DNA of 64,000 nucleotides from Mobula birostris (Eukaryota), in the NCBI RefSeq assembly GCF_030028105.1, contig NC_092374.1, positions 193,993,345 to 194,057,344 of the forward strand, read 5' to 3'. Below, in pieces: positions 1,103 through 58,994 of the stretch; positions within the stretch are counted from its first letter, which is position 1, and every line of letters starts with the position of its first letter. The position numbers and the translations under genes were made by a program. A model generated the notes under the pieces. The model searched no databases, was not told the DNA's origin, and saw only the letters and a list, made by a program, of their open reading frames with translations.

Positions 1103-1237
1103 GTGAGATGTCATTTCCCACACATGAAGCTAATCAGTCCTGTTTATCTAAATGCTGGTAGATCCCGTCCATCAGATTTAATTCCAATATTTTATCACCT
1201 CCGATGTTAGGCTCACTTGGAAGAATAACGTAATGAT

Positions 1238-1487: not shown

Positions 1488-1749
1488 GTCTTTGCTGCCC
1501 CTATGAATGAATATTAGCCATCCTCCAGTCCTCTGGAACTTCTCCCGTTGGTATGGAGGTTCCAAGAATCTTTGCAAGTGCCTCTGCAATTTCTTCCGTA
1601 GCTTCACATGAGATCCAAGAATTCACTTGATCAGGCACAGGGTATTTCCCCACCTTAATGTGCTTTAAGGGCGTCGATACCTCCTATAACTGGTTTTGCA
1701 ACTATCCCATAAACTCCGGAGCAGGACCTTTACCGTTGCATATTTAAGT

Positions 1750-2340: not shown

Positions 2341-2924
2341 GAGTTGTCATCTCGGACGCATGTGGGCTTTCGGGTAATTTACCTGTTAAAGAACAACGGT
2401 AGAATTAGAATTACACCTTTATTAATTATTAGCTCTTCCGGGAGGGATCCGGGGAAAATCTGTCTTCGACTATATAAAACTCCTGTAATTTCCATTCCCT
2501 GCCGAATTGTGGACTGCATCGAACTGTGGAAGTTTCCTTAATTCCCAATAAAAAAGGAAATAATGGGAGTCCATGGACTGGGAAACAGAGTTAATGTTTA
2601 CAGTTCTGAGATCCTTCAGGCGAAACAAAACGTTAATATTTCGCTCTGACTCAGGATAGAAATATTAATTGTTTCTCTCTCCGCAGATGGTACGTGACCT
2701 GCTGAGTTTTTCAAAAGCATTTTCTGTTTTTATTTCAGATTTCCAAAATCTACGAACTATCTTAATTATTTTATCTATTCCGTCAAGAGGTGTGAACGAC
2801 GTGATTCGTTTGTTGGCGGTTGTCCGGCGTACCAACAATCACAGGAGACCCGAGCGGGGGTTTTAACGTGGGAGAGTTAACTAGGACAGTTCCACACTCT
2901 TACCCTCGGATGTCCGGGTGCAGT

Positions 2925-3366
2925 GGTACGAGTAGTCGTCACAAACTGGGGTCTTCCTTGGTTGTAGTGGGTGACCATGACATCTTCCGTGCCTTGTCGT
3001 GCCGTGCGCTGTCCACGGAGAGTTGCAGAACCGCCTTCCTGGCTGTTAGATCTCACTGTTGATCACATCTGTCCAGTCCGCCGGATGAGTTCAACATTAA
3101 TTCTGTTTCCCATTCCATAGATTTCCACTAGTTTCCTTCGTATTATAGGACGGGGATTTCCCTATCTCACTCGAGTATGAGGTCCACCGGCTGCCTTCAC
3201 CTGGTTTAGCCCGCCTGTCGAAGCGGTCTACCCGAGTGTGGCCGCTTTCGCATGCAGACAGGTACTTGGAGCTGAGCGTCTGGTGGAACCCAAGGGTAAG
3301 TGAGCTGCCCCAGGATGGACAGGACAAGCCGCTTCAGCAGAGGAGCTACCCCTCCCTGGACAGCCC
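2925..3366 (-). mobile_element. RTE-like retroelement non-coding fragment
   Basis: Recognised from memory of RTE-type UTR motifs only. No ORF support. Confidence 0.3.
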
Positions 3367-3529
3367 ATTTCACCAACTGTTACCAATTGATATGTTACCA
3401 ATTATTTAACCCCTTCCGTTAAAGTGACACGTTGTTGTGGGGATTGAAGTCAAATGCGAAATAATTTACATTAACTGAGATACGACAGTTTCGTAGCTTA
3501 CATTAACCATTTCGGTTTGATACGTAGAA

Positions 3530-3790
3530 CCATTGCAGCAAATGTTAGCGCTGTTTTCTTGCACCTCCTGCGTCCGCGGGTTCGACCCCGATCTATGGTG
3601 CAGTTTGTATGGGTGGAGTTTGCATATTCCGCCTGATTCCCTGCGGGTGCACCAGCCGTGTGGGCTCCCCCCACACCGCCGGGAGCTACGGTTCATTACG
3701 CGTCCCTACGACTTGTGGAATTGTCTTAATTACGGTGCGAATTACGGGAGGAGTGGAAGGGAAGTTGGGGAGAGTGTGTAGCCCAGTCAG
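3530..3790 (+). mobile_element. Degenerate V-SINE
   Basis: B-box gggttcgacccc followed by ggagtttgcatattc and a V-domain-like core. Confidence 0.45.
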
Positions 3791-4168
3791 CACTGGAGTA
3801 GAGCCGGCGATCGGCGTGGGCTGAATTGCCTTCTTCGCGCGCTGCGCGATGAGGGATTTGAATGTGAAACTGCGTTTGGAATCTGTCAGTCCAAAAGGGC
3901 ATCTTACCAAGGAAAGGACGTGGCTCATCGCTCAACGACCCTAACGTCACTGAACCGCTTATTGTCACGCTTTCCCCGCTCCTAATCTCTTTGTAACTCT
4001 CCTTATGGTTTATCCAGCTTGTTCCAGTGATTCGGAAATCAACTGGAAAAATCCAGTGGACGGTACTTAATCCCTCCCAATTTTCCAACAGGTTGCACGA
4101 GGAGGCGCGGCTGTGAGAAGGGAGAAGTAGCGAACACTAAATATCTCCTCTGCTTTAGAGGAGTAACG

Positions 4169-4211
4169 ATGGAGGTGGGCGCCATTCTGTGGCTCCTGAC
4201 CGTCTCTTCCG
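4169..4211 (+). CDS. Exon 1: signal peptide [14 protein letters not shown](G)
   Basis: Strong Kozak aacgATGG, hydrophobic core, and a phase-1 donor G|GTAAGT typical of IgSF leader exons. Confidence 0.88.
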
Positions 4212-7200
4212 GTAAGTAGCTTTCTGTTCCTTTACAGCTACAGCTTGGGGGAGAAGGCAATGGGCAGCGCGGGAAAAGCGGGAAGGTTCGTCTGCTTCAT
4301 TTGCGTTCACAACCAACACACCTACGGAGGCACTGTGGGCAGCTCGCGAGGGTCGCCACACATTCCAGCGCCAACATTGATGTCCACAATGTCGGCAGAA
4401 CAACATAAAGCACAACAAAACGCAACGAAACAAGCCCCTTCCCTCCCTCCCACGCGCACACACGGACAGTCCACCAATTCCGAGAACAACGTTCGGGCTT
4501 CTAGTCTCCAGGCTTCCGACATCGACCCCCTGACTAGCCGACGGGGGAAGGGGGGGGGGGCTGAATTCCAGGTCGAACACTGAGGACGCAGACTTCTCGT
4601 TTCTCCCTCCTTCCTTTCCAATCATGATGAAGGGTCTCAGCCCGAAACGTCAACTGGTTATTCCCCTCCACAACTGCTGCCTGACCTCCCGAGTTCGTCC
4701 TGTTACTCTGGATTTCCCGCATGTGCAGAATCTCCTGAGCGTGGGAGTTGGGAAGTTTTGTTACAGATGTACCAGTGACCGTGAGGCCGCACTTGGATTA
4801 TTCTGTAGAATTTTAGCCTCGGTGATTGTGGACTCCTAGCCCCGAAACAGGCCCTTCGGCCCAACTCGTCCTTGTTGATCGTGTTAACCAACGAACTTGT
4901 CCTATCTGCCCGCGTTTGGCCCACAGCCCGCTAAATCCCTCCGACTCATGCACTTATCTAGAAGGCTTTAAAATGTTTGTAATTTACTCGCGGCCACCGC
5001 CATTTCTGTCAGCTCATTTCAACCACGTAAAACCATTTATGTAAAGAAATGGTTTAATATCCCTTTCAAAACTCTCCTGTCTAATCTATGTTCGCTTGTT
5101 GGTAACAACATCCCCCCACCCCGGTGAAAAATGCTGTTTTCAGAATATCTATGCCCCTTATTGTGTTACATCCCCCTATAAGGTGACCCCTCAATCTCCT
5201 ACATTCCAGAGAATAAAGTACTAGTCTGTGTAACCTCTCCTTGTAACTCAGGCCCCCAAATTCTGACGACATCCAGGTAAACCATATCTCCGCGCTTTCT
5301 AACTAATAACATCTACAACAGAGTGGCCAATTCTGTACAAAATATTCCAAGTGCAGCCTCACCAACGACTTGTACGACAGAAACATAACTTCTGGACTCC
5401 TGTCCGCAAAGCTCTGACTGAAGCTCAGCGTACTGAACATTGTCTTCACTACCTGTCTGCCGCTTTCAATGAGCTATGCACTCGTACTCCTAGGTTCCTC
5501 TTTTCCAGGCTCCGATCCGCACTTTCTCGGTAACTGTAACACTTCATTCCCCATTCTGCTATTGTTCCTTCTTTACACTAACTCATTGAATCGATGTGAT
5601 AAAATGATCTGTATGGGTGGCAAACAAAACGTAGTTTTTCACTGTACCTCAGTACATGTGACCACAATTAACCAATTTACCCATTTTAAAGTTTGCTCTC
5701 TGCTTTCAGGCATTGGTGCTGAGAAGTTTGTGGTGATTCAGGACAAGTCCAGCATTGTTGCCACGGAAGGGGAGACGGTGGTTATTCCATGCAGACACAA
5801 TGTCACGAATAAGATATGGTCGTATCGCTGGTTCAAGGGTGCCAGAAATGGAATAGAAGTGACCAAAGAAACAGCAGAGTACAGAGGCCGCTTCTTCAGA
5901 CCTCAAGGGGGTGATCCCTCCACTAACAGCACAGATGTTTCTATGCAACTGAAGTACGTGCGGCCGAGTGATACTGGGATGTACGTATGCAAGTTGGAGG
6001 CAATAAAATGGAAAATGTATGGGGCAGGGACGATTCTCGCAGTGAGAGGTAAGCCAATCATCAAGCATCTCCTTGTCTAAGCAAATCAGACCCACCACCC
6101 GAACAGAATTTGGTCAAGGCTGGAAAGTGCTGGAGTCACTTAGCAGGTCAGTCAGCAACTGTGAGGAGAGAAGCAGCAAAACGTTCAGATCTGTGACCAA
6201 TCCTCAGGGAAGAGAAGGAGGGTAAACTAGAAGAAAGAAGAATCTTGTAAACAATTTTTTCCCAGTACTGAGGAAAGATCTTCCACTTCAAGCATTAACT
6301 CTGTTTCAGTTCCCACTGATGCTGCCTGACCTGCTGAGCATTTCCAGCATATCCAGTTTTTTACCTCAGATTTCCAGCATCTGGAGGCTTTTAATTTTCA
6401 TTGTTAGAATTTCACACCCTGGATAATGACAAAATCGTTCCAGCACAGAAAATGTGGAGGGGGTGAGTGGTCACAAATCAAATCTCCCCTCCAAGGACTC
6501 TGTCTGCTGACTTCTTGCTGCCTCAGTAAAGCTGCCAACATAATCAAAGACCCCACCCACCCAGGACATTCTCTCATCTCCCCTCTCCCCTCTCCCATTG
6601 GGCAGAAGATACAAAAGCCTGAAAGATCAAACTGCCAGGCGCAAGGACAGCTTCTATCCCACTGTTATGAGATATCTCAGATCAAGTTCTCAGTATTCTC
6701 AAGAGGGAGGGTGAGCAGCCAGATGTCGTGGTCCACGTAGGGACCAGTGACGTGGATACGAAGAAGGAGGAGGTCCTGCAAAGAGAATTTAGGGAGTTAG
6801 GTGCAAAGTTGAAGGACAGGACCTCCAGGGTTGCAATCTCAGGATTGCTACCTGTGCCACGTGCTAGTGAGGCTAGAAATAGGAAGATAATGCAGCTAAA
6901 TACATGGCTAAGGAGTTAGTGCAGGAGGGAGGGCTTCATGTTTCTGGACAATTGGGCCTTGTTCCAGGGAAGGTGGGACCTGTTCTGATGGGACGGGTTA
7001 CACCTAAACTGGAGGGGAACTAACATCCTTGAGGGAAGGCTTGCTAGTGCTGCTCCGGGGGGGGGGGGGGGTTTAAACTAGATTTGCAGGGGGAGGGGAA
7101 CCAGAGTGTTAGAGTAGATAGTGACGTGGAGGAGGATAAAGGTCATGCGAGAACTGTAAGTATAGTACATGGAGTAAAGCCAGATCTAACATATAAAGAG

Positions 7201-16200: not shown

Positions 16201-19200
16201 CCGGCCATTGCTGCTCTGCTCTCTTTCCTGCAAATGTCCCTTTCCAGTCAACTTTGGCCTGCTCCCCTCTCATGCCATTGTAAATTCCTTTATTCCACTG
16301 AAATACCGACAAATTGGATTTTATTTTTTCCCTGTCAAATTTCAATGTGAACTTGATCATATTGTTATCACTGTGCCCTAAGGATTCTTTAACCTTAAGC
16401 TCTCTTGTCACCTCCACAACATCCAATCCAGCATAGCCAATCCCCTAGTGGGCTCAACACCAAGTTGTTCTGAAAAGCCATCCCATAGATGTTCTACAAA
16501 TTCTCTCTCTTGAGGTCCAGTACTGACCTGGTTTTCCCAATCCACTTTCATGTTAAAATTCCCAATGATTATCATGATATTGCCCTTTTGACATGTCTTT
16601 TGTATCTCCTGCTGTAATCTGTAATCCACATCCCGGCTGCTGTTTGGAGGCCTGTATACAATTGCCATTAGGGCCCTTTCACCCTTGCTGTTTCTTAACT
16701 CAACCCATTGACACTCTACACTGGTTGTCGCCAACCTTTTTAAGCCCAAAATCCCCTACCTCAGCCTTGGTGAAAGGCAAGATTGACCTACTAAATCGTT
16801 TAGTCACACGCATGCGCACCAGGCAGAATAGACCTGGAAGTAAAACCCCGCAACCCAGAAACAATCTCTCTTTACAAACGGCTTTCCGTAGCGGGAGTAT
16901 TGCTATATTACCATTATCTTAATTACTATTACTTATTTTTATAATGTTCACATTACAACACCTTTAATTCTATGTTTCATTATTTAATTTTATTTCAACA
17001 TGAAAAATAAATGAATAAAAATTGTTGCACTCAGTGTGATGACTGGGGCTGAATACTTTCTGCTAGTTCCCTGAAATTTGGCTCATAACTACATACAGCC
17101 AGTCTGAGACAGTATGTGATGTGTCTGTCAGTAAGACAGCTCCTGTACTTCGATTTCATAATTTTCATCTGTTGCAGCACAGTACCCTCGCAAACCTCCT
17201 GACAGACTGAATGTTGAATCTGCCAAATTTTTCAGGTGTTTTGTATTGGTAAGCTGTTACTGAGACACTAGTATGTTTCAGAGGTACACAAGATAATGAC
17301 ACCACTGTTTTTTGTTTCCCAGTTATTTACATTTGGGGACTGTTGGAATTTAAAGGGGAAGAAGTGAGTAATGTGAACATTATAAAGATAAGTTAATACA
17401 AATTAGAATAATGGTAATATAGCAATACTCCCGCTACGCGGCTACGGAAAGCTGTTTGTAAAGAGAGGTTGCTTCCGGGTTGTGGGGTTTTACTTCCGGT
17501 CTTTTCTACCGCGGTGTATGGCGGGGGAGATATACACACATGCACACTGGGCAGAAAGAACGGAACTAAAACCCTGCAACCCGGAAACAATCTCTCTTTA
17601 CAAACAGCTTTCAGTAGCTGGAGTATTGCTATATTACCATCATCCTAATTAGTATTACTTATTTTTATAATGTTCACATTACAACAGTATTTGTGTATTT
17701 ATTTATTTTTCATTTTTTTGGGAACTACTGGGAAAGTCTCAAAGATTGACCGGTCGATTGCGATCAACCAGTTGGCAACCACTACTCTACACCTTGCAAT
17801 CCTATGTCATCTCTTTCCAATGATTTAATATTTCTTATACACAGAGCCACACCACCCCCTCTGCCTACTAACCTATCTTTCCAATATACCGTACATCCTT
17901 GGACGTTAAGCTCCCAATGACAGCCATCCTTTAGCCAAGTTTCAGTGATGGCCACAACGTCATATTTGCTAATGTTGAGCTGAATTTCAAGATTGTCCAT
18001 TTTATTCCTTATGCTGCGAACATTCAAGTACAACACAACCTACTTTGCATGTTATTTTCTGCCTGAATTGCACTTTCTCTGTAACTGTAACACTTCATTC
18101 CCCATTCTGTTATTGTTCCTCCTTTGCACTAACTGATTGAATTGATGTGATGAAATGATCTGTATGGATGGCAGATAAAACGTAGTTTTTCACTGTACCT
18201 CAGTACATGTGACAATACTAAACCTGTGCCTTCGTCGCTGCCACTGCTACTGTGTGATCCAGAATCTCCGGAGGAGAAAGCCCCGAGTCCTTGGCTTTGC
18301 TTGTTGCTCGGCAGCCAGGCGGAGTCGATGTGCTTGGCAGAGATGTTGCTCGGTGCTCAGTGTCGGAGGGCTGGTCGGAGGCTCGAAGTTTTCGGACGGA
18401 CTCAGAGTCAGCGGTGGTCGGGTGCTTCCAATGCATCGGCCGTTGTCGGCGCCTGAAGGTTTATGGCAGGGAGAGTTTCTCCCTTTTGCCACCTGCTATC
18501 AGGACTATCAGGTGTCGATCGGAACTTTGAGAATTTTTTTTACCATGCCCATGGTCTGCTCTTTATCAAATTATGGTATTGCTTTGCACTGCTGTAACTA
18601 TATGTTATAATTATGTGGTCTTGTCAGTGTTAGTCTTTGGTTTGTCCTGGTTTTTTTTTTGTGATATCACTCTGGAGGAACATTGTATCATTTCTTAATG
18701 CATGCATTTCTAAATGACAATAAACGAGGGCTGAGTGTCCTCATAATCTAATCTAAAAAAAATTTACCCATTTTAAAGTTTGTTCCCTGCTTTAAGGCAT
18801 TGGTGCTGAGAAGTCTGTGGTCATTCAGGACAAGTTCAGCATTGTTGCCACAGAAAGGGAGACAGTGGTTATTCCATGCAGGCATAATTCCACGAGTAAG
18901 ATATGGTTGTACCATTGGGTCAAGGGTGCCCAAAATGGAATAGAAATGACCGATGAAACTGAGGAGTACAGGGGCCGCTTCTTCAGACCTGAAGAGTTTG
19001 ATCCCTCCCTTAACATGAACAATGTTTTCATGCGACTGAAGTACGTGCGGCTGAGTGATTCTGGGATGTACTTTATACTTTATTCTTTATTGTCGCCAAA
19101 CAATTGGTACCAGAGCGTACAATCATGGCAGCGATATTTGATTCTGCTCTTTGTGCTCCCTGGAGTACAAATCGATAGTAAATATTAAAAATTTAAATTA

Positions 19201-46200: not shown

Positions 46201-48129
46201 TCCAGAATGACAAGCTTATGGTATGAGGAGCATTTGATGGTTCTGGGCCAGTATTCCCTGGAACTTAGAACAATGAAGGGGAATCTCATTGAAACCTATA
46301 GAATTATGAGAGATATCGATAGGATGATTGCAATCAGGCTTTGTTCCATTGAGGTTGGGTGGGATTACAACCATTTGTCATGGCTTAAGGGTGAAAGGTG
46401 AGAAGTTTAAGGTAAGAAGTTTAACTTCTTCATTCAGAGGGTCATGAGAGTGTGGAATGAGCTGCCAGTGCAATTGCTCCACACGAGATCGATTTCAAAG
46501 TTAAGAGAAGTAGGAATCTGGAGGGCTATAGTCCTGGTGCAGGTTGTTGGGAGTAGGCAGCTTAAGTGGTTTTGGGCATGGACTAGATGGCCGAAGGGTT
46601 ATTTTCTGTGCTATACTTCTCTATAGCTCTATGAATATTGAAAGGCCTAGGCAGAGAGGATTGCTCCTATAGTGGTGGAATCTAGGACCAAAGAGCACAG
46701 CCTCACAATAGAGGGACGTATATTTAGAACAGAGATGAGTAGAAATTTGTTCAGCCAGAGGATGATGAATCTGTGGAATTTATTGCCATGGACGGTTGCA
46801 GAGGACAATTCATTAGGTATATTTAAAGCATGGGTTGATAGTTTCTTGGTTAGTCAGGCCGTCAAACACCTGAACCATGGCTGCTGCACAAAGATTACAC
46901 TGGGCCTGTGTACATATCTGACTCCAGGTCCCTCTCTTCGCCCTGATACATTACCCCATTGTCCTTTGAAAATTTGGCTACTCCTGTCTGGGGCATCTCC
47001 TGCCCCAGTACTGGTCACAGTGACACAGGTTTATGAAGCAGCACATGAGCAGGACAATTCCCCCAACCACCCCAACTTGCACTTTATCAATGAGTGACCT
47101 CCTTCCCCCTCTTTCTCCTCACGGCCTGAAGACATTCAGTAACTCAATGGACAATGACATGGGTAAGTAAGTCCTCTTGAGCGTGGCTGATGCAAAAATG
47201 GGTGCAACCTCCGAACTCCCTGACACCCCAGTCACTCCTCACCTCAGCAGGCCATCTGTCCCATCGGTCCTAATTGTCAGCATTACCAACAGCCTGTCCT
47301 GGTCCGTCCACATTGATGCTACAGCCAGGAAAGTTCACCAACACCTCTAGTTCCTAAGGCAGTATCACGGCTTGGTAGGGCAACTGCTGTGCCCATGACC
47401 ACATCGAATTGCACAGCTCAGCACAGCATGGAAACTGGCCTCACCTCCATGCACTCTGTATTTCTCGCTGACTTGGCAAAGCAGCCAGCATAATAAAGAT
47501 CCTATCCACCCTGGTCATTGTTGCTCGATCCCCATCCCATTAGGCAGTAGATACAAAAGTCTGAAAGCACGTACCACCAGGATTCAGGACAGCTTCTACC
47601 CCACTGTTATCAGAGTATTGAATCGTTTGCTTGTACGATCAGATGGAGTCTTGACCTCACAATCCACCTCCTCATGTCCTTGCACCACACTTTCTCTGTA
47701 ACACTACATTCAGCATTCTGTTAGTGCTTTTCCCTTGTACTATCTCGATGCACTGACGTAATGGTATGGTCTGTATGATGTCTGTACTTCAGTGCAATAA
47801 TAAACAACTCACCAATGTAAGCAGACCAGGGTTTAGAATTGTCTTCGGACGAGAGGGCACCTTCAACCAGTGAAATCCACCATTTATTCCCAATGCAGAA
47901 ACCAATCTCTGCACAGGAGTAACCCACAAGGAGACAACAAAAGGAATTAGGAACAAGAATTGTGTCCTGTGGCACTGTTCACTCCTCCTCGCCTGCGCTC
48001 TCCATGTTCCTGCCCGTTGCTTTCACCTGTGGCAAAGGTTCACTGACATTCTCGTATTCACTCTCACAGATGTGATCACCCAGTGTCGACCAGACAACTC
48101 GCCGGTCTCCGATGAAGAGGTAAGTACAT

Positions 48130-48211
<82 letters not shown>

Positions 48212-51200
48212 TATACTAGATATATATAGTTATGTAGTTCATATCCTTGACAAATAGGAGACCACTCAGCCTGTTGATGTCTGTCTGCCCCAATTCTTCC
48301 ACTTGATCCCCTGCAACCTGTTCTCCCCACATTCCCACTGGGCTGCTCCTTGTTGGATATTTGTCTAGTGCAGGGGTCCCCAACCCTTTTCGCACTGCGG
48401 ACCGGTTTCATATTGACAATATTCTCGCGGACCGGCCGACCCGGGGGTCGGGTGGTGGTGGTGGTAGGGTTGCCAACGATCAAGAGTAGCTGTCAAATAC
48501 ATTGGGTATACCCTGAAAGGACTACAATGACCATGAAGACTTGCGCGGGCACCAGTGCGCATGTGTGATTTGCGTGCCGATTTTTTTTAAACTACAAATC
48601 GTTTTTGGTGGTTCTGTTCGGAGGGGGAGGTGTTATAGGTGATAAGTGGCTAATACACTCAATTTCGTTTCTAAAAGGGTTTATCTAACGAATTTCATAT
48701 TAAACACACAGCGCATATTTTCCTCGCATGAATATAGCGATAAGTCAATTATCAGGGGAGCTTGAAGTAAGTGTTGAACGAACTTCCAGTAGAAGTGGTA
48801 GAGGCAGGTTCGGTTTTATCATTTAAAGAAAAATTGGATAGGTATATAGATAGGAAAGGAATGGAGAGTTATGGGCTGCAGGTCGGTGGAACTAGGTGAG
48901 AGTAGCATTCGGCACAGACTAGAAGGGCAGAGATCGCGCGCACACACACACACAAATAAATATGCTGAACACCAGCTTTTCATTATATAGCTCCACCCTT
49001 CTATCACCATAGTGACTCACGAGCTGCTCGGTGCCTCTCTCTCTCTGAATCAGCGGCACACTCTCTCTCTTTTTAAAGGCACACTCCATAATGAATAATC
49101 CTTAGGGATTTTGTCACACCTCCCTCCTTTTGGGAAAAATTTTGAGCAAGGAGCAAATTTTTGTCCAACTGTAGACTGTAAAGCTTGAAGCAATACATGT
49201 GTAATTATCAGCTAATATAGCAAAAGCGTATACAAATTTTAACTTAACACCTGCATAAACAATCGGCTATAGTGTTGTCAGTACCCTTTATGTTTTATTT
49301 CCATGTCATATTCTTGCAAGATCAGACTCCAGTTTAGTAACCTTCTATTCTTATCCTTCATCTTACTCAGAAACACTAATGGATTATGGTCAGTGTAAAT
49401 CACAAGTGGTTTCTGCGCAGGACATACATAGACATCAAAATATTGCAAGGCTGAAATGAGTGATAGCAACTCCTTCTCAACAGTGGAATAATTCTTCTGG
49501 TGCTCATTAAATTTCTTTGAGAAATAAGCTACAGGATGTTCAATGTCATCATCACCCTTTTGTAAGAATACTGCCCCAGCAGATTCGTCACTAGCATGTA
49601 CAGCTCCCGAAAATGGTTGAGTAAAATTAGGTGCTTTAAGCACAGGTTGATAACACAGGATAGTTTTTAGTCGTTCAAAGGCCTCCTGGTAGAGCTCACT
49701 TCATACAGATCTTTCACTCTTCCCTAGTAGTTTCGTTAGAGGGAGAGTGATATCCGTGAAGATTTTATAAAACTTACGGTAGTACCCAACGATTCCTAAA
49801 AACCTTCTTAAAGTTTTCTTGCCCGTCGGAACGGGAACCTCAGCAATAGCTTGTACCTTGGTCTGCACAGGAGCCAGTTGGCCCCGGCCTACTACATAGC
49901 CAAGGTGAGTAACAGTGGCATGGCCAAGTTCAATTTTAGAGAGTTTAACAGTAAGATTGGCCTGGAAAGCTAGTCAAACAGCTTCTCTACTGCGGAGATA
50001 TGCTTCTCCCACGTATCATTCCATACAACCAAATCGTCAATATAATCCTCTGTATTTTATAAACCTCGAATCATAGAATTAATCATTCTTTGGAATATCC
50101 CTGCAGCATTTTTCATTCCAAAGGGTAAAACATTATACTCATACAATCCAGATGGTGTGACAAATGCAGAGATTTCTCTAGCCCTTTCTGTCAAGGGAAC
50201 ACACCAGTACCCTTTTAACAGGTCAATCATTGTAAGGTATTTAGCCTTTCCCACCTTATTAATACAGTCACCCACTCTCGGAATAGGATAAGTATCTGTC
50301 TTGGTCGCTGCATGAACTTTCCTGTAATCAGTACAGAATCTCATGCTGATGTCCAGTTTTGGCACAATTACACAGGGCAATGCCCAGTCTGAGCTAGATG
50401 GCCTAATCATGCCGTTTGTCAGCATGTACCCAATTTCTTGTTCAGCCATTTTACACTTTTCTAAATTCATTGTATAGGGATGTTGCTTAATTGGGTCAAC
50501 GTGACCTAAAATTACATCATGCACTGCAGCTGTGCATTGTTTTGGAATATCAGGGAACAAATCCTCATATTTGCTAATTAATCCCTTCAATTGATTTTGC
50601 TATTCAGGCTCCAGATGATGGACTTTACTGTCAGTGTTTTCCAAATGGAATTCCAGTGGAATTCCTGAGCCTTGTTGGGACTATACTTAGCTTGTTAAAA
50701 TTATCTGGTAACTCGTTACCAGTCTCCATGACTCCACTTGTTTTCATAATAGTACTCTCAGGTGCTGTCTCCGAGTTATAATAAGGCTTTATCATATTAA
50801 CGTGTACCACTTAAGTAGCCTTCCTTCAGTTGGGAGTCTTAACAACATAATTCAAAGAGTCAATTTTTTAAATTATCTGGTATGGTCCACTAAATTTTGC
50901 TTGGTGGGTTGATCAAAAGTTGGAACAGAACCAGAACATTATCTCCAACATGATACATCTGTTCTCTAGTTTTTCTGTCATACCAGACCTTCATCTTCCT
51001 CTGAGAGTTCTCCAAATCCTGCCTTGCAAGGACACAAACCTTGTTAAGTCTATCTCTGAATTCCAAAACATAACTGAACATGCTTACACATACCTCCTGA
51101 TTAGACCACTTCTCCCTGAGTAAAGTTAAAGGTCCTCTGGCCCTGTGACCGAAAACAAGTTCAAACGGGATAAACCGTAACGATTCTTGAATCGAGTCTT

Positions 51201-54200
51201 TGACAGCAGACAAAAGTAAATGCACACCTTCATCCCAGTCTTTTCCGTTTTCCACACAGTGTGTTTTAATCATTGTCTTAAGAGTGGAATGAAACCTTTC
51301 CAAGGCTCCTTAGGACTCTGGGTGATATGCAGATGATACGATCTGCTTAACTCCCAGTTCACCAACCATCCGCTGGAACAACCCTGAGGTGAAGTTACAG
51401 CCTTGGTCGGATTGAATCTGTTTGGGCAGACCAACCAGAGTAAAAAAAACTTGATGAGCACCCTCACCACAGTTTTACCTTTAGTATTTCGGAGAGGAGT
51501 CGCTTCGGGGAACCTAGATGCAGCACACATAATGCTTAACCCATACTGATGGCCAGCTGGAGTTTTTGGTAATGGGCCAACACAATCCACTATGACTTTG
51601 GAAAAAGGTTTACCAAAAGCAGGTATCGACTGAAGTGGGGCTACTGGGATGGGTCTCATTAGGTTTCCCCACAATTTGGCAAGTATGACAGGCCCTGCAA
51701 AAGGTAACAACATCTTTCTTTAAATTAGGCCAGTAAAATTCCTTCATAATCTTTCTCACAGTCTTATTCACTCCAAAATGTCCACCTTCGGCTTCTTATG
51801 GGCCATGTTTAAAATTTCAGCTTTGCAAACTTTCGGAACCACAACTTGATGCACAATGGTCCAATCCTCACTTGCAGGCACAGTGGATGGTCTCCACTTC
51901 CTGATTAACACCCTTTCCTTAAGGTAATATCCTATTGACTCCTTCTGAATCTCATCATCGGAGAGAGCTGCTTTTTTAAAGCCACAATTTCAGGATCTCG
52001 GTTTTGATCTGCTAGGAATTCTTTCCTAGACAAAGATAAACCTCGCTCATCAACCTTACTACCCAAGTCCTGTTGAAACAGGGTCGGTAGAAAAGTCTCT
52101 GATAAATCATCATGATCTGAACCCCTGTTTTGGCTATCATGGGCATTAGAATCCCCCTGCTCCGAACTATCTGCATCAGCAGATTTTTTAGACATGCTTC
52201 GGATTACTGCGCATGTGGGGTAAATATCCGTATCCATGTGTGGGTTGTTAGCTGCAGGTTTCCTCGTTAACTGCACTGCTGGATAAACATCCCCACCTGC
52301 AAGGTCATTACCGAGCTGCTGGATTGTCTATCAGTAATCCAGATCGTACCCCTATCTTGACGGGTCTTGATACCAAGTCGCATTTCAAAATTACCTTATG
52401 CAAAGGCACAGCCTCAGTCCCCTTTCCAATACCTTTGATAATATTCACTCCATCAGTTTTCATCTCGTCACCGAATTCCAAAACACTGTCTAATATTAGT
52501 GACTGAAAAGCCCCAGTATCTTGCCAGATTCTCACTGGAACCACAGTTGACCCCTCCTTTACAGACACAAACCAATTTGAGATAAACCGCTCAAATAACG
52601 CTTGAATTCGGTCAGACCCCTCCTTCCTTAGCAGTGTCTCAACTGACTGAACACAAGCATTTGGGATTGTCTCCTTTTCTTTTCCTTTTTCCCTTTTCAG
52701 AGTAAAACAACTAGATGCCACATGACTGGGCTTCTTACAAAAGTTACATGTAAAACTGGAAAATTTTCCTTTTGACTGCTTTCCTTCCTCTTTACATTTG
52801 TCAATAGTTCCCGACTTACTTTCTGGTTTAACCTGTGGGTTATCTCTGTTACTCTTTTGGTAGCGATTATTCGAGAAAAACGTAACCTTATGGGTTAAGG
52901 CAAACTCGTCTGCTAACCAAGCAGACACTGAAAGTGTCGCCAACTCTTTCTCAAATAAGTACGTCCTTAGTTCAGCAGGGACGCAGCTCTTAAACTCTTC
53001 AATCAATATCAACTCTCTTAAGTGATTAATATCCTCATTCGCCCCTTTGAGCTACACCAACGATTGAAGTACACCTGTTTTCCATGGGCAAACTCCACAT
53101 ACGTTTGGTTCCAAGACTTTTTCAAATCTCGAATCTTTTGTCTGTACACCTCCGGATCCAACCTCATAACCCTTAAGCACAGCATCTTTCACTGTGCTAT
53201 AATCATTTGCCTCTACAAGAGACTGGGCAGAATACGCTTGCTGAGCCTTCCCCTTAATCACACTTTGTAACAGCACAACCCACTGATCCCTTGGCTATTT
53301 CCGAATCAGGGCAACTTTTTCGAAGTGCAGGAAATACCTATCCACTTCGGTTTCATCAAATGGAGGTAGCAACTTAATTTCTTGGCTGGCATTAAACAGT
53401 ACAACCAGGTCATTACCACGGTCTGGCACTTGATATCTGCTGCCATTTCTCCCTCTCGAACTCTGTCTTTCTGCCTCTCTAGCCTCATACTGCCTCTGCC
53501 TTTCTTTATCCTCAGTCTCTAATTTAAGTCTATCTAATTTCATTTGTTCCAGTCGTAACTGGATCTCCTCTTTACCTACAGGAAATCCCTTTAACTCCTC
53601 CTCATCAAATTGCTTCGTAGAGATATAGCATTCAACTACTTTCCTTTGAATTTCTACCTTTGTCATACCCTTCTTTAGCTCCGTAAGTTTCAGCTCTTTA
53701 ACAATGTCCACAACTCATCCTTTCTAGCTTTCTTCAAAGCCACAGGGTCTGGCGATGCCAGAAAATCCCAAACATCCACTTCTGCTGTTTTCTACACGTG
53801 AGTCAATCAAAGGAAAAGTAGCCAATAAGATTGTTAATCACTCAATCAGTAAGCCCCCAATTTAGTTCATATCTCGGACGCAGGCCCCAATTTTGTTACG
53901 TAACCCGTAACGGGTTAAAAGAAACAGCAGAAATGGAACGCACCTGGAGTCTAGTTTTGCTGTTAACTAACTCTATTTTATTAGTAGCTATGTAATAAAG
54001 CAACATACAAACAGATAAATCTAACAGGTTAGCAGAGTTTATGCATATATAGGTGTGTAAATACAAAACCCAAACTTCTTCAAACTTAGGTGGTAATTGA
54101 TACAGTCTTATGAAGGTATGTAAACGAAGTTAGTTCAGTTCGTGACATTGAGTTGAGTAGAATTGAGGAGAGAGGTGATTTGTTATCCAAGTAAGCTGAT

Positions 54201-57200
54201 GCCGTCAATCTTTTCGTGGTCCTCCGAATACTTTAAGGTCACCAAATGTGACCACACTAAAGGCACCATCTTCATGTGGTGAAGCTATAAACCCAGGCAA
54301 GGGTTAAATACACTGATAGCTTTCCACCGGTCACTCCTTTTCTTGCACTGTGAGAGCCACTGGTCGATTCTCCCGATCGATCCACAAAACCCACCCGTTT
54401 TGGGGCACTCAAAGCTCATCTGGTGTCAGTTTCTTCTGTGTCTCTGTACGCCTACAAGAAAGCCAGCTGACCTTGTATATATATATATACAAACATGCTG
54501 AACACCAGCTGTCCATTATATAGCTCCACCCTTCTATCACCATGGCGACTCACGAGATGCTCGGTGCCTCTCTCTCTTAACCAGCGGCACACTCTGTCTC
54601 TTTTTAAAGGTACAGTCCGTAATGAATAATCCTTAAGATTTCGTTGCAGTGAACCATCTGTAAATAACTGACTGGAGACACAAGGGAAGGCAAATGCTAG
54701 AATCTGGAGTGTCAAACAATCTGCTGGAGGAGTCAATCGGGTCGAGCGGGCTCTGTGGCAGGGGGTGCTGGTGTGAAATATTTCCAGTCAAAACCCTAAA
54801 CCTTGCACCAGGGCTTGGAAGTGGAGATGGCCTGTACAAAGAGATGAGGGTGTGTTGGAGGTAACTGGTAGGGGCTGCTGGATAACAGGCAGATAATGCT
54901 CTGCAGATGACAGAGAGGGGTGGAATTTGGAGACAAGCGTGGATGGCAAACAGCTATGGGAAGGATGGGATATTTGGAAGTTTGGTTGACCAGCAAGCTT
55001 GGCAAGATTTTTCGAGCCGTTTCGGCTACAATCATGTGGGATATAATTTGTTGTCGTATCTCTTTTATCTGAATCTGACTCTTCGGGGAGCATCAAGGGA
55101 GACGTGGGCCTGGTCTAACTTAATCCTTCACTGTATTGCCGTGCCTACAGTGAAAAGCTTAGATTTCCATGCTGATTGTACTCAGATCATTCTAATCGAA
55201 TCCTTTTCTCCACAAGGTACCCACTGTAGAGAACATCCAGTATGCGGAGATATATCCAAGTTACTCCAAAAACCGAACTCCTGCCAAGACATCGGTGGAA
55301 GATGGCGATTTGGAGTGAGTTACTTAACTTATCTTAGCTTAGTTGTGGCTGGATACATAGGGTGACTGAGTATGGAGAATCACAGCACAGAAATAAGCCC
55401 TCCAGCCCAGCATAATCCTCGGACTATGTTGTTCGAGGACGCAAACAACTCATTTCACTGCACAGGGTTCGATGTGCGGGTGTCAGGTAAAGATCGTCTT
55501 TAACTCTGGCATTAAGTTATAGGTGGAAGAATTGGAGAGAAGATTGGGAACAACATTTTCACAAGAGTGGAGCGGGAGTCCAGAACTCCTTTGTGAAAGG
55601 GCAGCAGGCACAGAAATCTTCAGCACCTTAAACTGTGTGATGCGTGTGTGTCTGTCTGTATGAGTGTGTGTGTGTGTGTGTCTGTGTGATCTAACAGCCG
55701 CTCAAATGTACTTCTATATCAACTTGCACCATTCCAGGCCACTACCACGCTCTGTGTGTTTAAAAAAAAACCACTTACTGCACAATCTCCTCTGAACTTT
55801 CTCCCTCTCACCTTAAGTGCATTTCCTCTGGAAAGAGGAAGAAATTGCCTTTAAACTCATGAGAGAACATAGGCCATCAACTTTTTGCTGTTGATGTTTC
55901 TGTAGCAGGCAATTTCTTTTTTACTAGGTCGAGTTACTAGCTCGACTCTCAACCCAGCACGGGTGGAAAGCTGCCAGGGGAGCCGACTGGGTTTGAACTC
56001 GGGAACTTTCGCTCCGAAGTCCAGCGCTGATGCCACTGCGCCACCAGCCAGCTACATTTCCTCTAATATTTGACGTTTATTATAATTGTTCAATTTTAAT
56101 ATTAATGAAATAATCAAACAGTTAAGATAATGATAAAAATGCATTAATATATAACCAAAAAGAACACCAAATAGTCACTTTAGACATGGTTGAATTCTGT
56201 GAGTAAAAGTCACACTGGAGTTTATTGTCATATGCATGGATGCAATGAAACAGTTAATTGTAGAAGCATCACATAGCATCACATAAACAGAGTTACACAC
56301 AAAATGCTGGAGGAACTCAGCAGGTCAGGCAGCATCTATGGAGAGGAATAAACACTCTGTTTCTGGTTGAGACCCCATCATCATGACTGAAAAGGGGGTG
56401 GGGGGGGGGGAGAAGTAGAGAAGCCAGAATGAGAAGGGAATGGTGGTGGGGGTAAGGAATACAAGCTGGCAGGTGATAGGTGAGACCAGGTGAGAGGGAA
56501 GCTGGGTGGCATTTGTCTGTGTTGCGTTGGATGTCCAGCTTCTGCAGAATCTCCTGTGTTTATCGTACTGACATTACTCTCAAGCAAAGCATACATTATG
56601 TATATTTTTAAGGACTTTACTCGCCTCTTGAATGAGTTGAGTAGTTTTGCTCCCTTTCCTGCAGAACATTGGGTCAGAAACACAGTACTGGGGGAGAGAG
56701 CACTTCATGGGTACCTGTTACAAAATGCACCAAACGCCTGGCTCCAGTGCAGCCAGTGTCACTGTGCACCGGGTACAGCATGAAATGGTGGGATTAGTGA
56801 GATACTGCGGGGCGGTCCCACTACAAGAGGTAGATGCTGAATTTCGTAAAATAAAAATCTGATGCCAGTCGCCACAGAAACGTAAAATGCCACCAGCACA
56901 GATTCCAGGTCTCATTAACCCCACCCTCCCCACTTCCTTTGGCAGGCAGGACGACGGCTATGACGAGCTGAACGTGATAGGTGAGTATCAAAGGTAGCAA
57001 CGCGTGGTGGAGAGACTGGGGGTACATGAGAACTGGGGTAAAATAGTGAGGTTAAACTGGGGACTGAAGTAAAATAGCCCATGGGGTTAAAATGGGGACA
57101 AAGGTAAAATAATGGGGTTAAAATGGGGACTGGAGTAAAATACTGGGGTTAAAATATGGACTGGGTAAAAGTGGGGTTAAAATGTCAGTGGGGGCAAAAT

Positions 57201-58994
57201 AGTGGGATTAAAATGGGGACTGGGGTAAAATAGTGGGGTTCAAATGGGGATGGGGTAAAATAGTGGGGTTAAATTGGGGACTGAGGTAAAATAGTGTGGT
57301 TAAAATGGGGACTGGGGTAAAAGTCGGGGTTAAAATGGGGATTGGGGTAAGTCAGTGGGGCCTGAGGGGTTAAAATGGATATAGTCATTAAAGCGGAGAC
57401 TCATGTAAAATGTGAATGGGGGTTCAGGGGAACTGGGATAAAATCATGGGATTAAAATGGGGATTGGGGTAAAATAGTGGGGTTAAACTGGGAATGGGGT
57501 AAAATCAATGGAGTTTAAATAGGGACTGGTGTGAAATAGTGGGGTTAAATAGGAACGGGGTGAACTAGTCAGTAGGGTTAAAATAGTAACAGATTTAAAA
57601 TGGGGACTGGAATATAATGGGGATGGGGAAATATCAGTGTGATTAAAATGGGGATGGAGTGCTTAAAATGGATACAGTCATTCGAATGGGGATTGAGGGG
57701 TAAAATGAGAATAGAGGTTCTATGGGAACTGGTTAAAATAGGCAGAGGTGTTAAAATGGTGACAGGAATTGGCTAAATAGGGACTGACCGAATTAAACAA
57801 GAATGAGGATAAATGGGAACTGAGGAGATTAAACAGGAATGGGACTAATTTGGGACAGGGGGTTAAACAGGAATGAGGCTAAATGGGGACATCTGTCAGT
57901 AACATTTACTGATGCTTTAGATGCCTCATTTGCTTCTTTCTCTATTTCACAGCAAAACGTAGCCTCCAGCCTGAAGAAGCCACAAACCAGGTAAGAAACC
58001 AAGCATTTGCTGAGGTCAGGGCAAGTGGGGAGATCCTGGAGAGATTCGAAAATGTAGCTGAGAAATGTTAAATTGAGCTGTGTTTGGCCCTTAGCTTCAG
58101 AAATGAAATGAAGTGGTGATTGGGTTAGAATCTGTCAGAACATTTTTCATTTCCTGTCCCTGTGGCTGGATTATTTCCAATAAGTCCCTGAACTGGAGAT
58201 GTGAGAGGGGAGATTGAGTAGATGAGGGGTGTATTCCCTTGAGTCTAGATTAACTAGACATTCCAGACCATGAGTGTTCGCACAACTGTTTGAACTAAAA
58301 CTGCTCTCGACTGGGAGAGTGTACATCAGAGGCCACTTGACACAAGTGATTCAGAAGCTGCTCACCTTATTGATAAGGACAATGATTTGTGCCTCCCAGA
58401 CCCCAGCAATGTGCGGGTTGGGTCAGTAGGATAATCGGCCATTGTAAGTATTCAATTGCGTAGATGAGTGGCGGAGTCTGCTGGAGGAGGAGCTGACAGG
58501 CATGCAAAGAAGGTAAAATTGGTGAGGGTAGGATCAGTTTGATCACTGGCACGGACACGTTGGGCCAGAGAACATTTTCTCTGACCTAATGAGACAAGAG
58601 GGGCTTTTTTCACTCAGCGAATTATTGGAAACTGGGATTACATTCAGTCACAGCGAGCAGAAGAGAGCTGGAAGAGCATCTGAAGGTCGATGGGCTGAGA
58701 GTGGAGCAGTGGGATTACCTGGTTTTTGCAAGAGCCAGTACAGCCTAGATAGGCCAAATATCCTCCTCCTGTACCTTGCCACTACAGAGGAGTTGGTTCT
58801 TTACTCCCAATGGTCAGGCCATACCAGTTAACAGAATTAATTTGTCTCTTCTGTGTTTTCAGTAGGAAGATGGGACTGTGAACAAACAGGTCTTGAGGAA
58901 GATTGGGAAGATCGGAGAAGCAGGTCCTCAAACGTGCTCTCAGCAGTTGGGTCGTGAATATAACAAGGATTCCAGTTTCTGTTCCTTTAATTGA
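4169..58994 (+). CDS. NCR3-like: Multi-exon NKp30/NCR3-related VJ-IgSF type I receptor with long tyrosine-motif tail (about 461 aa; spliced gene span)
   Basis: Join(4169-4211, 5710-6048, 34260-34589, 35641-35754, 37479-37497, 37595-37632, 38734-38774, 40048-40077, 43824-43867, 47125-47162, 48070-48119, 55217-55314, 56946-56980, 57953-57990, 58866-58994) gives 1386 nt in one open frame. All junctions are GT-AG except a GG acceptor before 47125. Confidence 0.75.
5710..6048 (+). CDS. NCR3-like: V1 exon: germline-joined VJ-type IgV domain, NKp30-like
   Basis: Acceptor tttcag and donor G|GTAAGC, phase 1-1. Has B-strand Cys (IPC), C-strand Trp (YRWFK), DTGMYVC and a J-like [24 protein letters not shown] resembles NKp30 GKEVRNGTPEFRGRL. 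Confidence 0.9.
6675..10108 (+). mobile_element. CR1-type LINE, 5'-truncated (ORF1 esterase remnant + ORF2 APE-RT), with stops and frameshifts
   Basis: [10 protein letters not shown] esterase motif, YLNARSI...ETW endonuclease, [10 protein letters not shown] and KFADD RT motifs, and a ctgttctatgttctat tail. Absent from the duplicated block at about 20735. Confidence 0.93.
12429..12618. repeat. About 190-bp near-perfect palindrome (Penelope-terminus-derived hairpin)
   Basis: caacacacatcaaagttgctggtgaacgcagcaggccaggcagcatc is the reverse complement of the distal arm. Arms pair up to a loop of about 10 nt, and the ORF track shows mirrored ORFs. Confidence 0.9.
13112..13199. repeat. 23-bp perfect inverted repeat / mini-MITE
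   Basis: cacacccaatttgtgtacctgct (13112-13134) pairs with agcaggtacacaaattgggtgtg (13177-13199). Confidence 0.85.
13205..13406. mobile_element. Tc1/mariner MITE
   Basis: TIRs cgaggggtgattgataa..gtggcctaagg / ccttaggccacgaacttatcaatcacccctc, flanked by TA on both sides. Confidence 0.85.
14138..18030 (-). mobile_element. CR1-type LINE ORF2, degenerate, interrupted by a hAT element
   Basis: APE ([11 protein letters not shown]...ETW) and RT ([26 protein letters not shown]) fragments, with the 3' tail near 14138. Confidence 0.92.
16722..17784. mobile_element. Non-autonomous hAT (Charlie-like) element
   Basis: TIR-like tggttg..ccaacc / gttggcaaccacta and an 8-bp TSD CTCTACAC (16714-16721, 17785-17792). 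It splits the CR1 peptide LQGVE|CQWVEL. Confidence 0.8.
18224..18760 (+). mobile_element. Retroelement 3'-end/SINE-like insertion just upstream of the V2 acceptor
   Basis: Absent from the paralogous intron upstream of V1. Ends with tgacaataaa and a taatctaatctaa tail. Confidence 0.6.
18797..20124 (+). pseudogene. NCR3-like: V2 pseudo-exon: duplicate of V1 split by a LINE insertion
   Basis: [11 protein letters not shown]...DSGMY (18797-19071) [insertion] [21 protein letters not shown] (20061-20123). Acceptor aag and donor A|GTAAGG are retained, and 33 of 112 codons differ in amino acid from V1. Confidence 0.9.
19074..20057 (-). mobile_element. 5'-truncated Rex1/Babar-type LINE inserted in V2
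   Basis: [13 protein letters not shown] motif and [13 protein letters not shown]...[12 protein letters not shown]. Candidate TSD TACTT at 19069-19073 and 20058-20062. Confidence 0.88.
21600..25700 (-). mobile_element. Old fragmented CR1 LINE (ORF1 + ORF2 remnants)
   Basis: Remnants of RT ([16 protein letters not shown]), APE ([12 protein letters not shown]) and ORF1 esterase (DGLHLNWRG; [10 protein letters not shown]). Confidence 0.8.
26370..30790 (+). mobile_element. Rex1/Babar-type LINE interrupted by a CR1 at 26579-29937
   Basis: [20 protein letters not shown]...[11 protein letters not shown] before the insertion and [14 protein letters not shown] after it. Confidence 0.85.
26579..29937 (-). 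mobile_element. Young CR1 LINE, near-intact ORF2, 5'-truncated in ORF1
   Basis: ORFs 28831-29601 (APE), 28342-28830, 27959-28345 and 26667-27953 (RT, 428 aa) are separated by one in-frame stop and two frameshifts. Confidence 0.95.
30800..31370 (-). mobile_element. Old Rex1/Babar-type LINE 3' fragment
   Basis: [14 protein letters not shown]...[14 protein letters not shown] (ORF 31174-31530). Confidence 0.7.
33338..33790 (-). mobile_element. CR1 3' fragment
   Basis: Peptide remnants [17 protein letters not shown] and VNLWNILPQ, with a tcttat-type tail. Confidence 0.7.
34260..34589 (+). CDS. NCR3-like: V3 exon: second intact VJ-type IgV domain, NKp30-like
   Basis: Acceptor ccattgcag and donor C|GTGAGT, phase 1-1. 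(G)KSKSFTVTQ...MVC...[16 protein letters not shown]...[27 protein letters not shown] and CKVRIDGIG resemble NKp30 EVRNGT and CRVEVLGLG. Confidence 0.88.
34770..35165. repeat. Minisatellite, about 43-44 bp unit (gtgggtcacacactgtcctatccccctctgggacccagtggg)
   Basis: Several tandem copies that are most homogeneous at 34960-35160. Confidence 0.9.
35641..35754 (+). CDS. TM exon [38 protein letters not shown]
   Basis: Acceptor tcccccacag, a hydrophobic run of about 25 residues, then an RRK stop-transfer. The phase-1 donor A|GTAACG is only moderate, so the 3' end is less certain. Confidence 0.8.
37479..37497 (+). CDS. Cytoplasmic micro-exon C1 (N)SLLFQ, phase 1-2
   Basis: Long pyrimidine tract + cacag, and donor AAG|GTGAGT. 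Confidence 0.8.
37595..37632 (+). CDS. C2 (R)[12 protein letters not shown], phase 2-1
   Basis: Acceptor ctttttctcttcag and donor CGG|GTAAGT. Only the phase-2 reading is open. Confidence 0.8.
38734..38774 (+). CDS. C3 (A)[13 protein letters not shown], phase 1-0
   Basis: Acceptor ttttacag and donor ACG|GTAAGT. Confidence 0.8.
40048..40077 (+). CDS. C3b [10 protein letters not shown], symmetric phase 0-0
   Basis: Acceptor tcttatttcacaacag and donor CCG|GTAAGA. At 30 nt it can be skipped in frame. Confidence 0.65.
40300..40850 (+). mobile_element. Rex1/Babar-type LINE 3' end
   Basis: [14 protein letters not shown]...HPLH...[11 protein letters not shown], followed by a short-repeat tail. Confidence 0.75.
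41330..42105 (+). mobile_element. Penelope-like element, GIY-YIG endonuclease remnant
   Basis: Degenerate [21 protein letters not shown] motif and a gatgctgcctgacctgctgagtt terminus. Confidence 0.7.
42270..43795 (+). mobile_element. Degenerate CR1 RT/3' end
   Basis: [22 protein letters not shown]...[13 protein letters not shown], with a tcttatggtcttat tail. Confidence 0.85.
43824..43867 (+). CDS. C4 [14 protein letters not shown], phase 0-2, YxxM motif
   Basis: Acceptor ttttccttctttag and donor AAG|GTGAGT. Confidence 0.82.
44740..46860 (+). mobile_element. Highly degenerate CR1 ORF2
   Basis: Remnants of [12 protein letters not shown] and KFADD motifs among many stops. Confidence 0.75.
47125..47162 (+). 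CDS. C5 (S)[12 protein letters not shown], phase 2-1, non-canonical GG acceptor
   Basis: Branch-like gtgac + pyrimidine tract + cacGG, with a perfect donor TGG|GTAAGT. The 38-nt length and phases are the only ones linking C4 to C6 in frame. Confidence 0.65.
48070..48119 (+). CDS. C6 (D)[16 protein letters not shown], phase 1-0
   Basis: Acceptor tcactctcacag and donor GAG|GTAAGT. Confidence 0.8.
48134..48232. repeat. Compound microsatellite (TG)n(TA)n(CA)n
   Basis: Directly visible, beginning 14 nt after the C6 donor. Confidence 0.95.
48371..48780. mobile_element. hAT-type MITE, one end only
   Basis: Terminus CAGGGGTCCCCAACC preceded by gtctagtg. No matching right end was found. Confidence 0.6.
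48958..54648 (-). mobile_element. Gmr1-like Ty3/Gypsy LTR retrotransposon (gag-PR-IN-RT-RH), decayed
   Basis: 5' LTR 53894-54648 and a PBS-like TGGGGCCTGCGTCCGAGAT. Gag has [14 protein letters not shown] and the protease motif is DTGA. Integrase (GHFGVNKT; VDCVGPLP; ERFHSTLK) precedes RT (RFCTDYRK; IDLLKGYW) and RNase H (DASDE...YTDHNPL). PPT 49119-49130, then a truncated 3' LTR 48958-49118. Confidence 0.9.
55217..55314 (+). CDS. C7 [32 protein letters not shown], phase 0-2, ITIM
   Basis: Acceptor tccttttctccacaag and donor GGA|GTGAGT. IQYAEI fits the ITIM consensus. Confidence 0.8.
55912..56052 (-). mobile_element. tRNA-derived SINE (tRNA-Arg-like head)
   Basis: A-box TGGCGCAGTGG, anticodon-like GACTTCGGAG, B-box GAGTTCAAACC and an A-rich tail. 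No acceptor stem. Confidence 0.75.
56946..56980 (+). CDS. C8 (E)[11 protein letters not shown], phase 2-1, hemITAM-like
   Basis: Acceptor cacttcctttggcag and donor TAG|GTGAGT. Confidence 0.8.
57030..57890 (+). repeat. G-tract satellite, about 30-31 bp unit (tggggttaaaatggggactggggtaaaatag)
   Basis: Many degenerate tandem copies with strong G skew on the + strand. Confidence 0.9.
57953..57990 (+). CDS. C9 (A)[12 protein letters not shown], phase 1-0
   Basis: Acceptor tctttctctatttcacag and donor CAG|GTAAGA. Confidence 0.8.
58866..58994 (+). CDS. Probable terminal coding exon EDGTVNKQ...SFCSFN* (if the distal AG is used)
   Basis: Tandem acceptor ttttCAG-TAG, TGA at 58992-58994, and AATAAA at 59165. 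Confidence 0.5.
   Translation, partial: EDGTVNKQVLRKIGKIGEAGPQTCSQQLGREYNKDSSFCSFN

Follow-up and report, generated by a model that had tools for sequence, protein, structure and literature searches.

A manta ray relative of NKp30 with two V domains and a candidate signalling tail of its own

The question raised by this locus is whether the short open stretches scattered over tens of kilobases of repeat-rich DNA belong to one gene and, if they do, what kind of receptor that gene encodes and how the receptor would signal. The window (the whole 64,000-nucleotide stretch of Mobula birostris DNA that we analysed) is vertebrate DNA rich in LINE and LTR retroelement copies, has no N runs, and holds no other gene. 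On the basis of a protein search, the gene is apparently unannotated in the window's own genome. A first-pass annotation had proposed an NKp30-related receptor of 15 exons, of which the ORF track shows only fragments, and the bacterial-style ORF list does indeed give just pieces of the gene.

An all-against-all HMMER search retrieved the M. hypostoma protein XP_062903900.1 (P0003; 419 aa; “uncharacterized protein LOC134346462”), and a search with the V1 exon retrieved P0001, a partial M. birostris protein. The M. hypostoma locus encoding XP_062903900.1 aligns collinearly over the entire window at ~96% identity, which identifies the window gene as the ortholog of M. hypostoma LOC134346462. Exact spliced GT-AG mapping of XP_062903900.1 on that locus, with the exon ends transferred to the window, yields 15 exons, all on the plus strand, that match the M. 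hypostoma protein exon for exon and agree with the first-pass annotation in their number and in the first base of the gene. The layout is a leader, V1, V2, a transmembrane (TM) exon and 11 tail exons (10 coding, of 19–98 nt, plus the stop-only exon 15), as follows:

4169–4211, plus strand: exon 1, start codon and signal peptide (14 residues), with a phase-1 donor
5710–6048, plus strand: exon 2, V1, a VJ-type IgV domain with J motif YGAGTILAV (Pfam V-set; V1-type profile)
18797–20124, plus strand: dead third V exon (V1b type), split by a retroelement into a left part (18797–19074) and a right part (20058–20124)
34260–34589, plus strand: exon 3, V2, a V-set domain with the J-like motif GEGVWPTV
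35641–35754, plus strand: exon 4, stalk, uncharged TM helix (25 residues) and RRKLC stop-transfer sequence
37479–37497, plus strand: exon 5, tail mini-exon of 19 nt
37595–37632, plus strand: exon 6, tail mini-exon (13 residues)
38734–38774, plus strand: exon 7, tail mini-exon (14 residues)
40048–40077, plus strand: exon 8, tail mini-exon (EDGNAPPCP)
43824–43867, plus strand: exon 9, YxxM site (within 10 residues)
47125–47162, plus strand: exon 10, tail mini-exon (13 residues), whose acceptor at 47123–47124 reads GG
48070–48119, plus strand: exon 11, a further tail mini-exon with a (TG)23 run after it
55217–55314, plus strand: exon 12, ITIM (ENIQYAEI), an exon contained in RNA runs X6 and X7
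56946–56980, plus strand: exon 13, acidic YxxL site (within 11 residues)
57953–57990, plus strand: exon 14, tail mini-exon (13 residues)
58863–58994, plus strand: exon 15, stop at cag/TAG, or alternative acceptor tag/GAA at 58866

All donors are GT, 13 of the 14 acceptors are AG, intron phases are compatible throughout the joined model, and the joined frame is open over the 14 coding exons. The single open frame claimed earlier is thus present, while its proposed length of about 461 aa is obtained only with the second AG of exon 15. At the first AG, which the NCBI M. hypostoma model takes, a TAG follows immediately and the protein has 419 aa; from the second AG of cagTAG/GAA, 42 further residues are read up to a TGA at 58992–58994, giving 461 aa. 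In the M. birostris paralogous locus L001 the extra 42 codons are likewise free of stops (with an in-frame 6-nt difference), and nearly every change there is residue-altering. The Hypanus protein ends in ...TNQEDGTVNQ, which implies that the second-acceptor reading is in use there and lends some precedent to the longer form. We regard 419 aa as the more likely product length.

RNA bears on whether these exons are joined in one transcript. Runs were drawn from two run searches and their contigs placed on window positions 34200–40150. Among the RNA runs found, none fits the window species: the k-mer shares are 0.13 for V1 and 0.33–0.67 for the ITIM exon (0.67 in X6, 0.33 in X7), the values expected for M. 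hypostoma being 0.13 and 0.53, and so fit M. hypostoma or other relatives. In these related rays the joint of V2 to the TM exon is seen repeatedly. Record 8 of X3 contains the whole of V2 from its acceptor and runs on into the TM exon, record 3 of X1 likewise links V2 with the TM exon, and record 24 of X7 (1173 nt) carries the same joint, with a TM piece that ends exactly at the predicted donor (35754) and is followed by 879 nt. Differences in this TM piece are unlike the ortholog, so that record 24 may partly derive from a paralogue. In record 18 of X6 the TM piece has exactly three ortholog-type differences and ends at 35751 (donor at 35754), with 99 nt more beyond it. The ITIM exon, exon 12, is likewise present in RNA contigs of related rays. 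Of the junctions predicted earlier the V2–TM joint is therefore the one borne out; neither the TM-to-tail joint nor any joint within the tail was seen directly in the RNA contigs, in which exons 5–8 are too short to place.

These gaps, and the fact that no single read or contig was seen to span V1 to exon 14, are what could be said for the V exons and the tail exons being separate transcripts that gene prediction has fused into a 15-exon chimera. Such a chimera is extremely improbable, as independent NCBI models from six elasmobranch species place the same tail behind NCR3-type V domains, the contigs join V2 to the TM exon and extend 99–879 nt beyond the TM piece, and intron phases fit from end to end.

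To which family do the V domains belong? Each is a VJ-type IgV domain in a single exon with a GxGTxLxV-like G strand, clear in V1 and degenerate in V2. V-type family profiles, the V1-type profile having the window V1 exon as its first sequence, were searched against PDB. For the V1-type profile, human NKp30 is the top solved-structure match (3e-18), followed among single-domain families by SIRP-alpha (6e-11); for the V2-type profile, human NKp30 is again first (2e-14), the next single-domain family being the TCR mu V (9e-9). The nearest named relatives are the author-submitted nurse-shark NCR3 proteins QTT61898 and QTT61904, then NCR3 of turtle, frog and lungfish. A maximum-likelihood tree built from 50 V domains unites all 39 elasmobranch ones, including those of QTT61898 and QTT61904, in one clade (support 96/90) against bony-vertebrate NCR3. 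Within it the window V1 groups with V domains of shark proteins bearing the same tail, while V2 forms its own long batoid branch. As the tree was built from NCR3-like sequences, leaving SIRP, CD28-family and Ig/TCR V domains outside its scope, it places these domains among NCR3-like genes and does not serve to exclude other families. The proposed relationship to NKp30 is upheld by both profiles and by the clade with nurse-shark NCR3; the phylogeny that the first-pass annotation called for has been obtained for the NCR3-like part of its intended sampling.

The automatic NCBI names of relatives (SIRP-beta-like or SHPS-1-like) suggest instead a SIRP-family gene unrelated to NKp30. A single-sequence PDB search with V1 agrees with them, as SIRP-alpha D1 (3e-9) scores better than NKp30 (2e-6), and Foldseek on a model of the two-domain ectodomain puts SIRP-beta-2 first. 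SIRP-alpha shares with the ray gene an N-terminal V domain of VJ type, a membrane span free of charge and an ITIM-bearing tail; its ITIMs are of the xYAxI/L type and recruit SHP-1/2. The single-sequence ranking of V1 as a SIRP-alpha relative is, however, overturned by the family profiles: in the V1-type profile NKp30 leads by seven orders of magnitude. The SIRP ectodomain is V-C1-C1, whereas the ray gene has no C1-set exons between V2 and the TM exon, P0003 contains only V-set domains, and the nurse-shark proteins that their authors named NCR3 lie within the same clade. The AlphaFold2 model of the two-V ectodomain is of moderate quality (pLDDT 72, pTM 0.51), and its Foldseek matches in PDB and among Swiss-Prot models are generic two-Ig proteins (scFv, FcRL, SIRP, HepaCAM) with TM scores <0.45, which do not discriminate between families. 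We therefore consider a SIRP identity very improbable. We place the gene in the elasmobranch NCR3 family, and its product most likely signals by means of a tail of its own with mainly inhibitory output.

The two intact V exons of the first-pass annotation are both present, but a third V exon had been overlooked. It is cut after MYF by a minus-strand retroelement of ~985 bp with TACTT at both flanks. The break is common to M. hypostoma, with which this region forms an unbroken 13.7-kb alignment. As the third V exon is intact in the paralogues with three V domains (P0001, P0154 and P0156), the two-V form is derived from a three-V form. A three-domain ancestor would thus have become a two-domain receptor when a retroelement destroyed its middle V exon. 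A neighbouring paralogue in M. hypostoma, P0002 (XP_062903898.1), is modelled with five V domains, one of V1 type and four of V2 type, and no TM exon. The P0002 model may be incomplete, to judge from record 24 of X7, in which an ortholog-like V2 is followed by a different TM exon.

Mobile and repeated DNA also occupies other parts of the locus. A 3.4-kb LINE with endonuclease and reverse-transcriptase ORFs lies on the minus strand of intron 2 (26577–29941). M. hypostoma lacks it at the corresponding site and carries copies ~96.5% identical to it at two other places of the locus, beside window positions 6362–6372 and 62466–62470; this LINE family has accordingly inserted in both lineages since their split. 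The minus strand of intron 11 (49278–53711), between exon 11 and the ITIM exon, carries a block that resembles an LTR retrotransposon and has ORFs for reverse transcriptase and RNase H as well as gag-like and integrase-like ones. Between V2 and the TM exon lies a minisatellite with 7.5 copies of a 45-bp unit (34827–35162), a 31-bp minisatellite (57032–57561) lies in intron 13, and the (TG)23 run (48134–48180) begins 15 nt past the exon-11 donor.

The tail comprises ~150 residues encoded by ten coding mini-exons and carries three tyrosine sites, IYTPM (YxxM), IQYAEI (ITIM) and DDGYDELN (acidic YxxL). A naive all-frame motif scan returns mostly chance matches; these three sites are conserved across species. 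The conserved blocks of the tail are a stretch of 14 residues, (I/V)xYAx(I/L) and D(D/Y)GYDELN, and the motifs are kept in Mobula, Hypanus, Scyliorhinus, Heterodontus, Chiloscyllium and Stegostoma. The ITIM agrees with the consensus (I/V/L/S)xYxx(I/V/L), relatives having IQYAVI, IHYAVI, VQYATI, IHYATL, VQYATL or IQYTEI. We find this tail in elasmobranch proteins only, behind one V domain (Chiloscyllium P0157, Heterodontus P0021, Stegostoma P0166), two (Mobula, Hypanus, Scyliorhinus) or three (Heterodontus P0152), and it matches no Pfam family. The idea of an NCR3-LST1 fusion was rejected, since the feature neighbours of the tail, the membrane adaptors C1orf162, LST1, SIT1 and SCIMP, score at most 0.71, which is within noise.

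How would such a receptor signal? Mammalian NKp30 (NCR3) has no signalling capacity of its own, its membrane arginine pairing with CD3-zeta or FcR-gamma (PMC6514059). The ray gene shares with it the non-rearranging VJ-type V domain in one phase-1 exon and differs in most other respects: it has two V domains in use and one dead as against one, a membrane span of 25 residues with zero charged residues as against one with an arginine, and an extended tail bearing YxxM, ITIM and YxxL sites as against a short tail without signalling motifs. The uncharged span, lacking an arginine for CD3-zeta or FcR-gamma, and the conserved tyrosine motifs together make signalling through its own tail, as the first-pass annotation had it, the sensible reading. 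Pairing with these adaptors by a membrane arginine would not be available, and the receptor would signal by its own phosphotyrosines. On ligand binding, Src-type kinases would phosphorylate the three conserved sites; IYTPM would then dock p85 of PI3K, and IQYAEI together with DDGYDELN would recruit SHP-1 or SHP-2 through their tandem SH2 domains, so that the net output would for the most part inhibit, or would be dual like that of BTLA. These steps are read from the motifs. The ITIM and YxxL tyrosines are 28 residues apart, a spacing that resembles the tandem ITIM pairs of other receptors. The tails of BTLA, PD-1 and CD96 combine a PI3K/Grb2-type site and an ITIM with a second tyrosine site ~25–30 residues on; the likeness to the ray tail, which is without homology to any Pfam family, is one of logic only. 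Other shark NCR3 members (P0041, P0037, P0012) have ITIM tails with xVQYxxLN repeats, unrelated to the ray tail.

The same motifs could be read as those of an activating receptor, in which the acidic DDGYDELN acts as a hemITAM recruiting Syk, the YxxM feeds PI3K and the ITIM is a modulator. HemITAMs, which consist of a single YxxL behind a tri-acidic DED(G) run and recruit Syk, are found in CLEC-2 and Dectin-1. The acidic run before YxxL in Mobula (QDDGYDEL, within a stretch of 11 residues), the conserved YxxM and the existence of ITIM-less forms (P0152, P0154) would suit this reading. It is ranked lower because the acidic run is found only in Mobula; Hypanus and most sharks have DYGYDELN or DFEYEELN. 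In addition, most members of the family keep the ITIM, and hemITAMs are known from the N-terminal tails of type II lectins. An activating receptor is thus rather unlikely, and we retain the mainly inhibitory or dual tail as the preferred reading.

This output need not be the same in all family members. Exons 10–12, which include the ITIM, total 186 nt with the same phase at both ends and constitute a frame-neutral cassette. In P0152 (Heterodontus isoform X1) and P0154 (a Mobula paralogue) exon 9 is joined directly to exon 13, and the Heterodontus isoforms X5 and X6 (P0158 versus P0021) are one mini-exon apart. As the ITIM cassette is frame-neutral and missing in other family members, the output of the tail appears tunable by splicing or gene copy. 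The L001 locus of M. birostris is ~90% identical to the window and different in structure; its positions 29477–30139, compared with window positions 39107–58531, are without ~19 kb that include exons 8–12 and possibly 13–14. The M. hypostoma counterpart of the L001 paralogue, P0154, has three V domains, and every signalling tyrosine in it is replaced (CPPM, DYDDNEMN).

Selection on the gene is visible more clearly over long distances than between the two close relatives. Against M. hypostoma, dN/dS is 0.36 overall, 0.33 in the tail and 1.9 in the TM exon. Coding sequence differs from M. hypostoma by 3.8% and is no less divergent than the non-coding background (2.4–2.9%), and the strongest evidence of constraint is for this reason the deep conservation. 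The blocks around V1, V2 and the TM exon (1103–6362 and 30929–36972) are 3.3–5.0% divergent, as compared with 2.3–2.5% in other long blocks, and synonymous divergence in the V exons, 0.09–0.12, is three to four times background. Fast evolution or exchange among tandem paralogues are possible explanations of this raised divergence.

The one acceptor that departs from AG is that of exon 10, which reads cacGG in the window and cacAG in M. hypostoma. Its consequences for the protein can be computed. Use of a cryptic in-frame cAG 15 nt inside exon 10 would lose only LKTFS and give 414 aa. Use of a site at +7, or skipping of exon 10, would shift the frame and end the protein at 344–347 aa, with the ITIM and YxxL gone. 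The 186-nt length of the cassette further implies that splicing exon 9 onto exon 13 would preserve the frame and remove the ITIM. Because this acceptor is broken, the distal tail is in doubt for the window genome, in which it may be altered or lost. When changes are polarised with Hypanus as the outgroup, 14 residues are derived in the window lineage and nine in M. hypostoma. Those of the window lineage at otherwise conserved positions are F107V (beside the V1 cysteine), R186C and L232P, the last two in V2, where L232P affects the J strand (GEGVWPTV in the window versus GEGVRLTV in other species).

It is accordingly possible, although unlikely, that the window gene is undergoing decay or that its distal tail is gone, either because the GG forces skipping of exon 10 or use of the +7 site, leaving a protein of 344–347 aa that ends after the YxxM, or because exon 9 is joined to exon 13 in an ITIM-less form. 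The change from AG to GG at 47123–47124, the three changes F107V, R186C and L232P within the excess of derived changes, and the dN/dS of the TM exon would all accord with decay. The frame, however, is otherwise open in all 14 coding exons, the in-frame cAG at +15 is strong and costs only five residues, the excess of 14 over nine changes is small, and the G at the acceptor may be an assembly error or a polymorphism. The reading that we prefer, and consider probable, is that the window holds the manta-lineage ortholog of LOC134346462, a type I receptor of the NCR3 family that has its own mainly inhibitory or dual tail and descends from a three-V ancestor.

The first-pass annotation did not recognise the architecture as a described one. 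In sequence databases it is not new, as the same 15-exon model is present at NCBI for M. hypostoma and near-identical models, unnamed like it, are there for Hypanus, Scyliorhinus, Heterodontus, Chiloscyllium and Stegostoma. The 15-exon, two-V layout is that of XP_062903900.1 (94% protein identity) and of the Hypanus sabinus ortholog LOC132393824 (P0155; 80% protein identity). A divergent NCR3 family of sharks has been published (Kinlein et al. 2021, Immunogenetics 73:333, as cited in PMC10450919), and the nurse-shark NCR3 proteins, members of this divergent multigene family, fall in the same V clade as the ray gene. In the accessible literature, a scope that excludes the full text of Kinlein et al. 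2021, we found no description of the tail or of the multi-V forms.

A broader and tentative scenario, which we regard as doubtful, is that these genes represent an old, adaptor-free type of the NKp30 lineage in elasmobranchs. The ITIM cassette would in that case let one gene, or a set of tandem copies, supply an inhibitory form (YxxM, ITIM and YxxL) or, minus the ITIM, a potentially activating one (YxxM and acidic YxxL), the number of V domains would vary from one to five by exon duplication and loss, and the loss at exon 10 in the manta would have fixed an altered tail.

To our knowledge, NKp30 is the one NK-cell receptor whose lineage can be followed from sharks up to humans, and the mammalian form is purely activating and adaptor-dependent. 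If our preferred reading is correct, the conserved branch of multi-V receptors with self-contained tails in sharks and rays would mean that the NKp30 family once spanned inhibitory or dual signalling as well, which would bear on the origin of paired activating and inhibitory receptors. Exon loss reshaping an immune receptor would, in addition, have a dated natural example in the dead V exon and in the broken acceptor.
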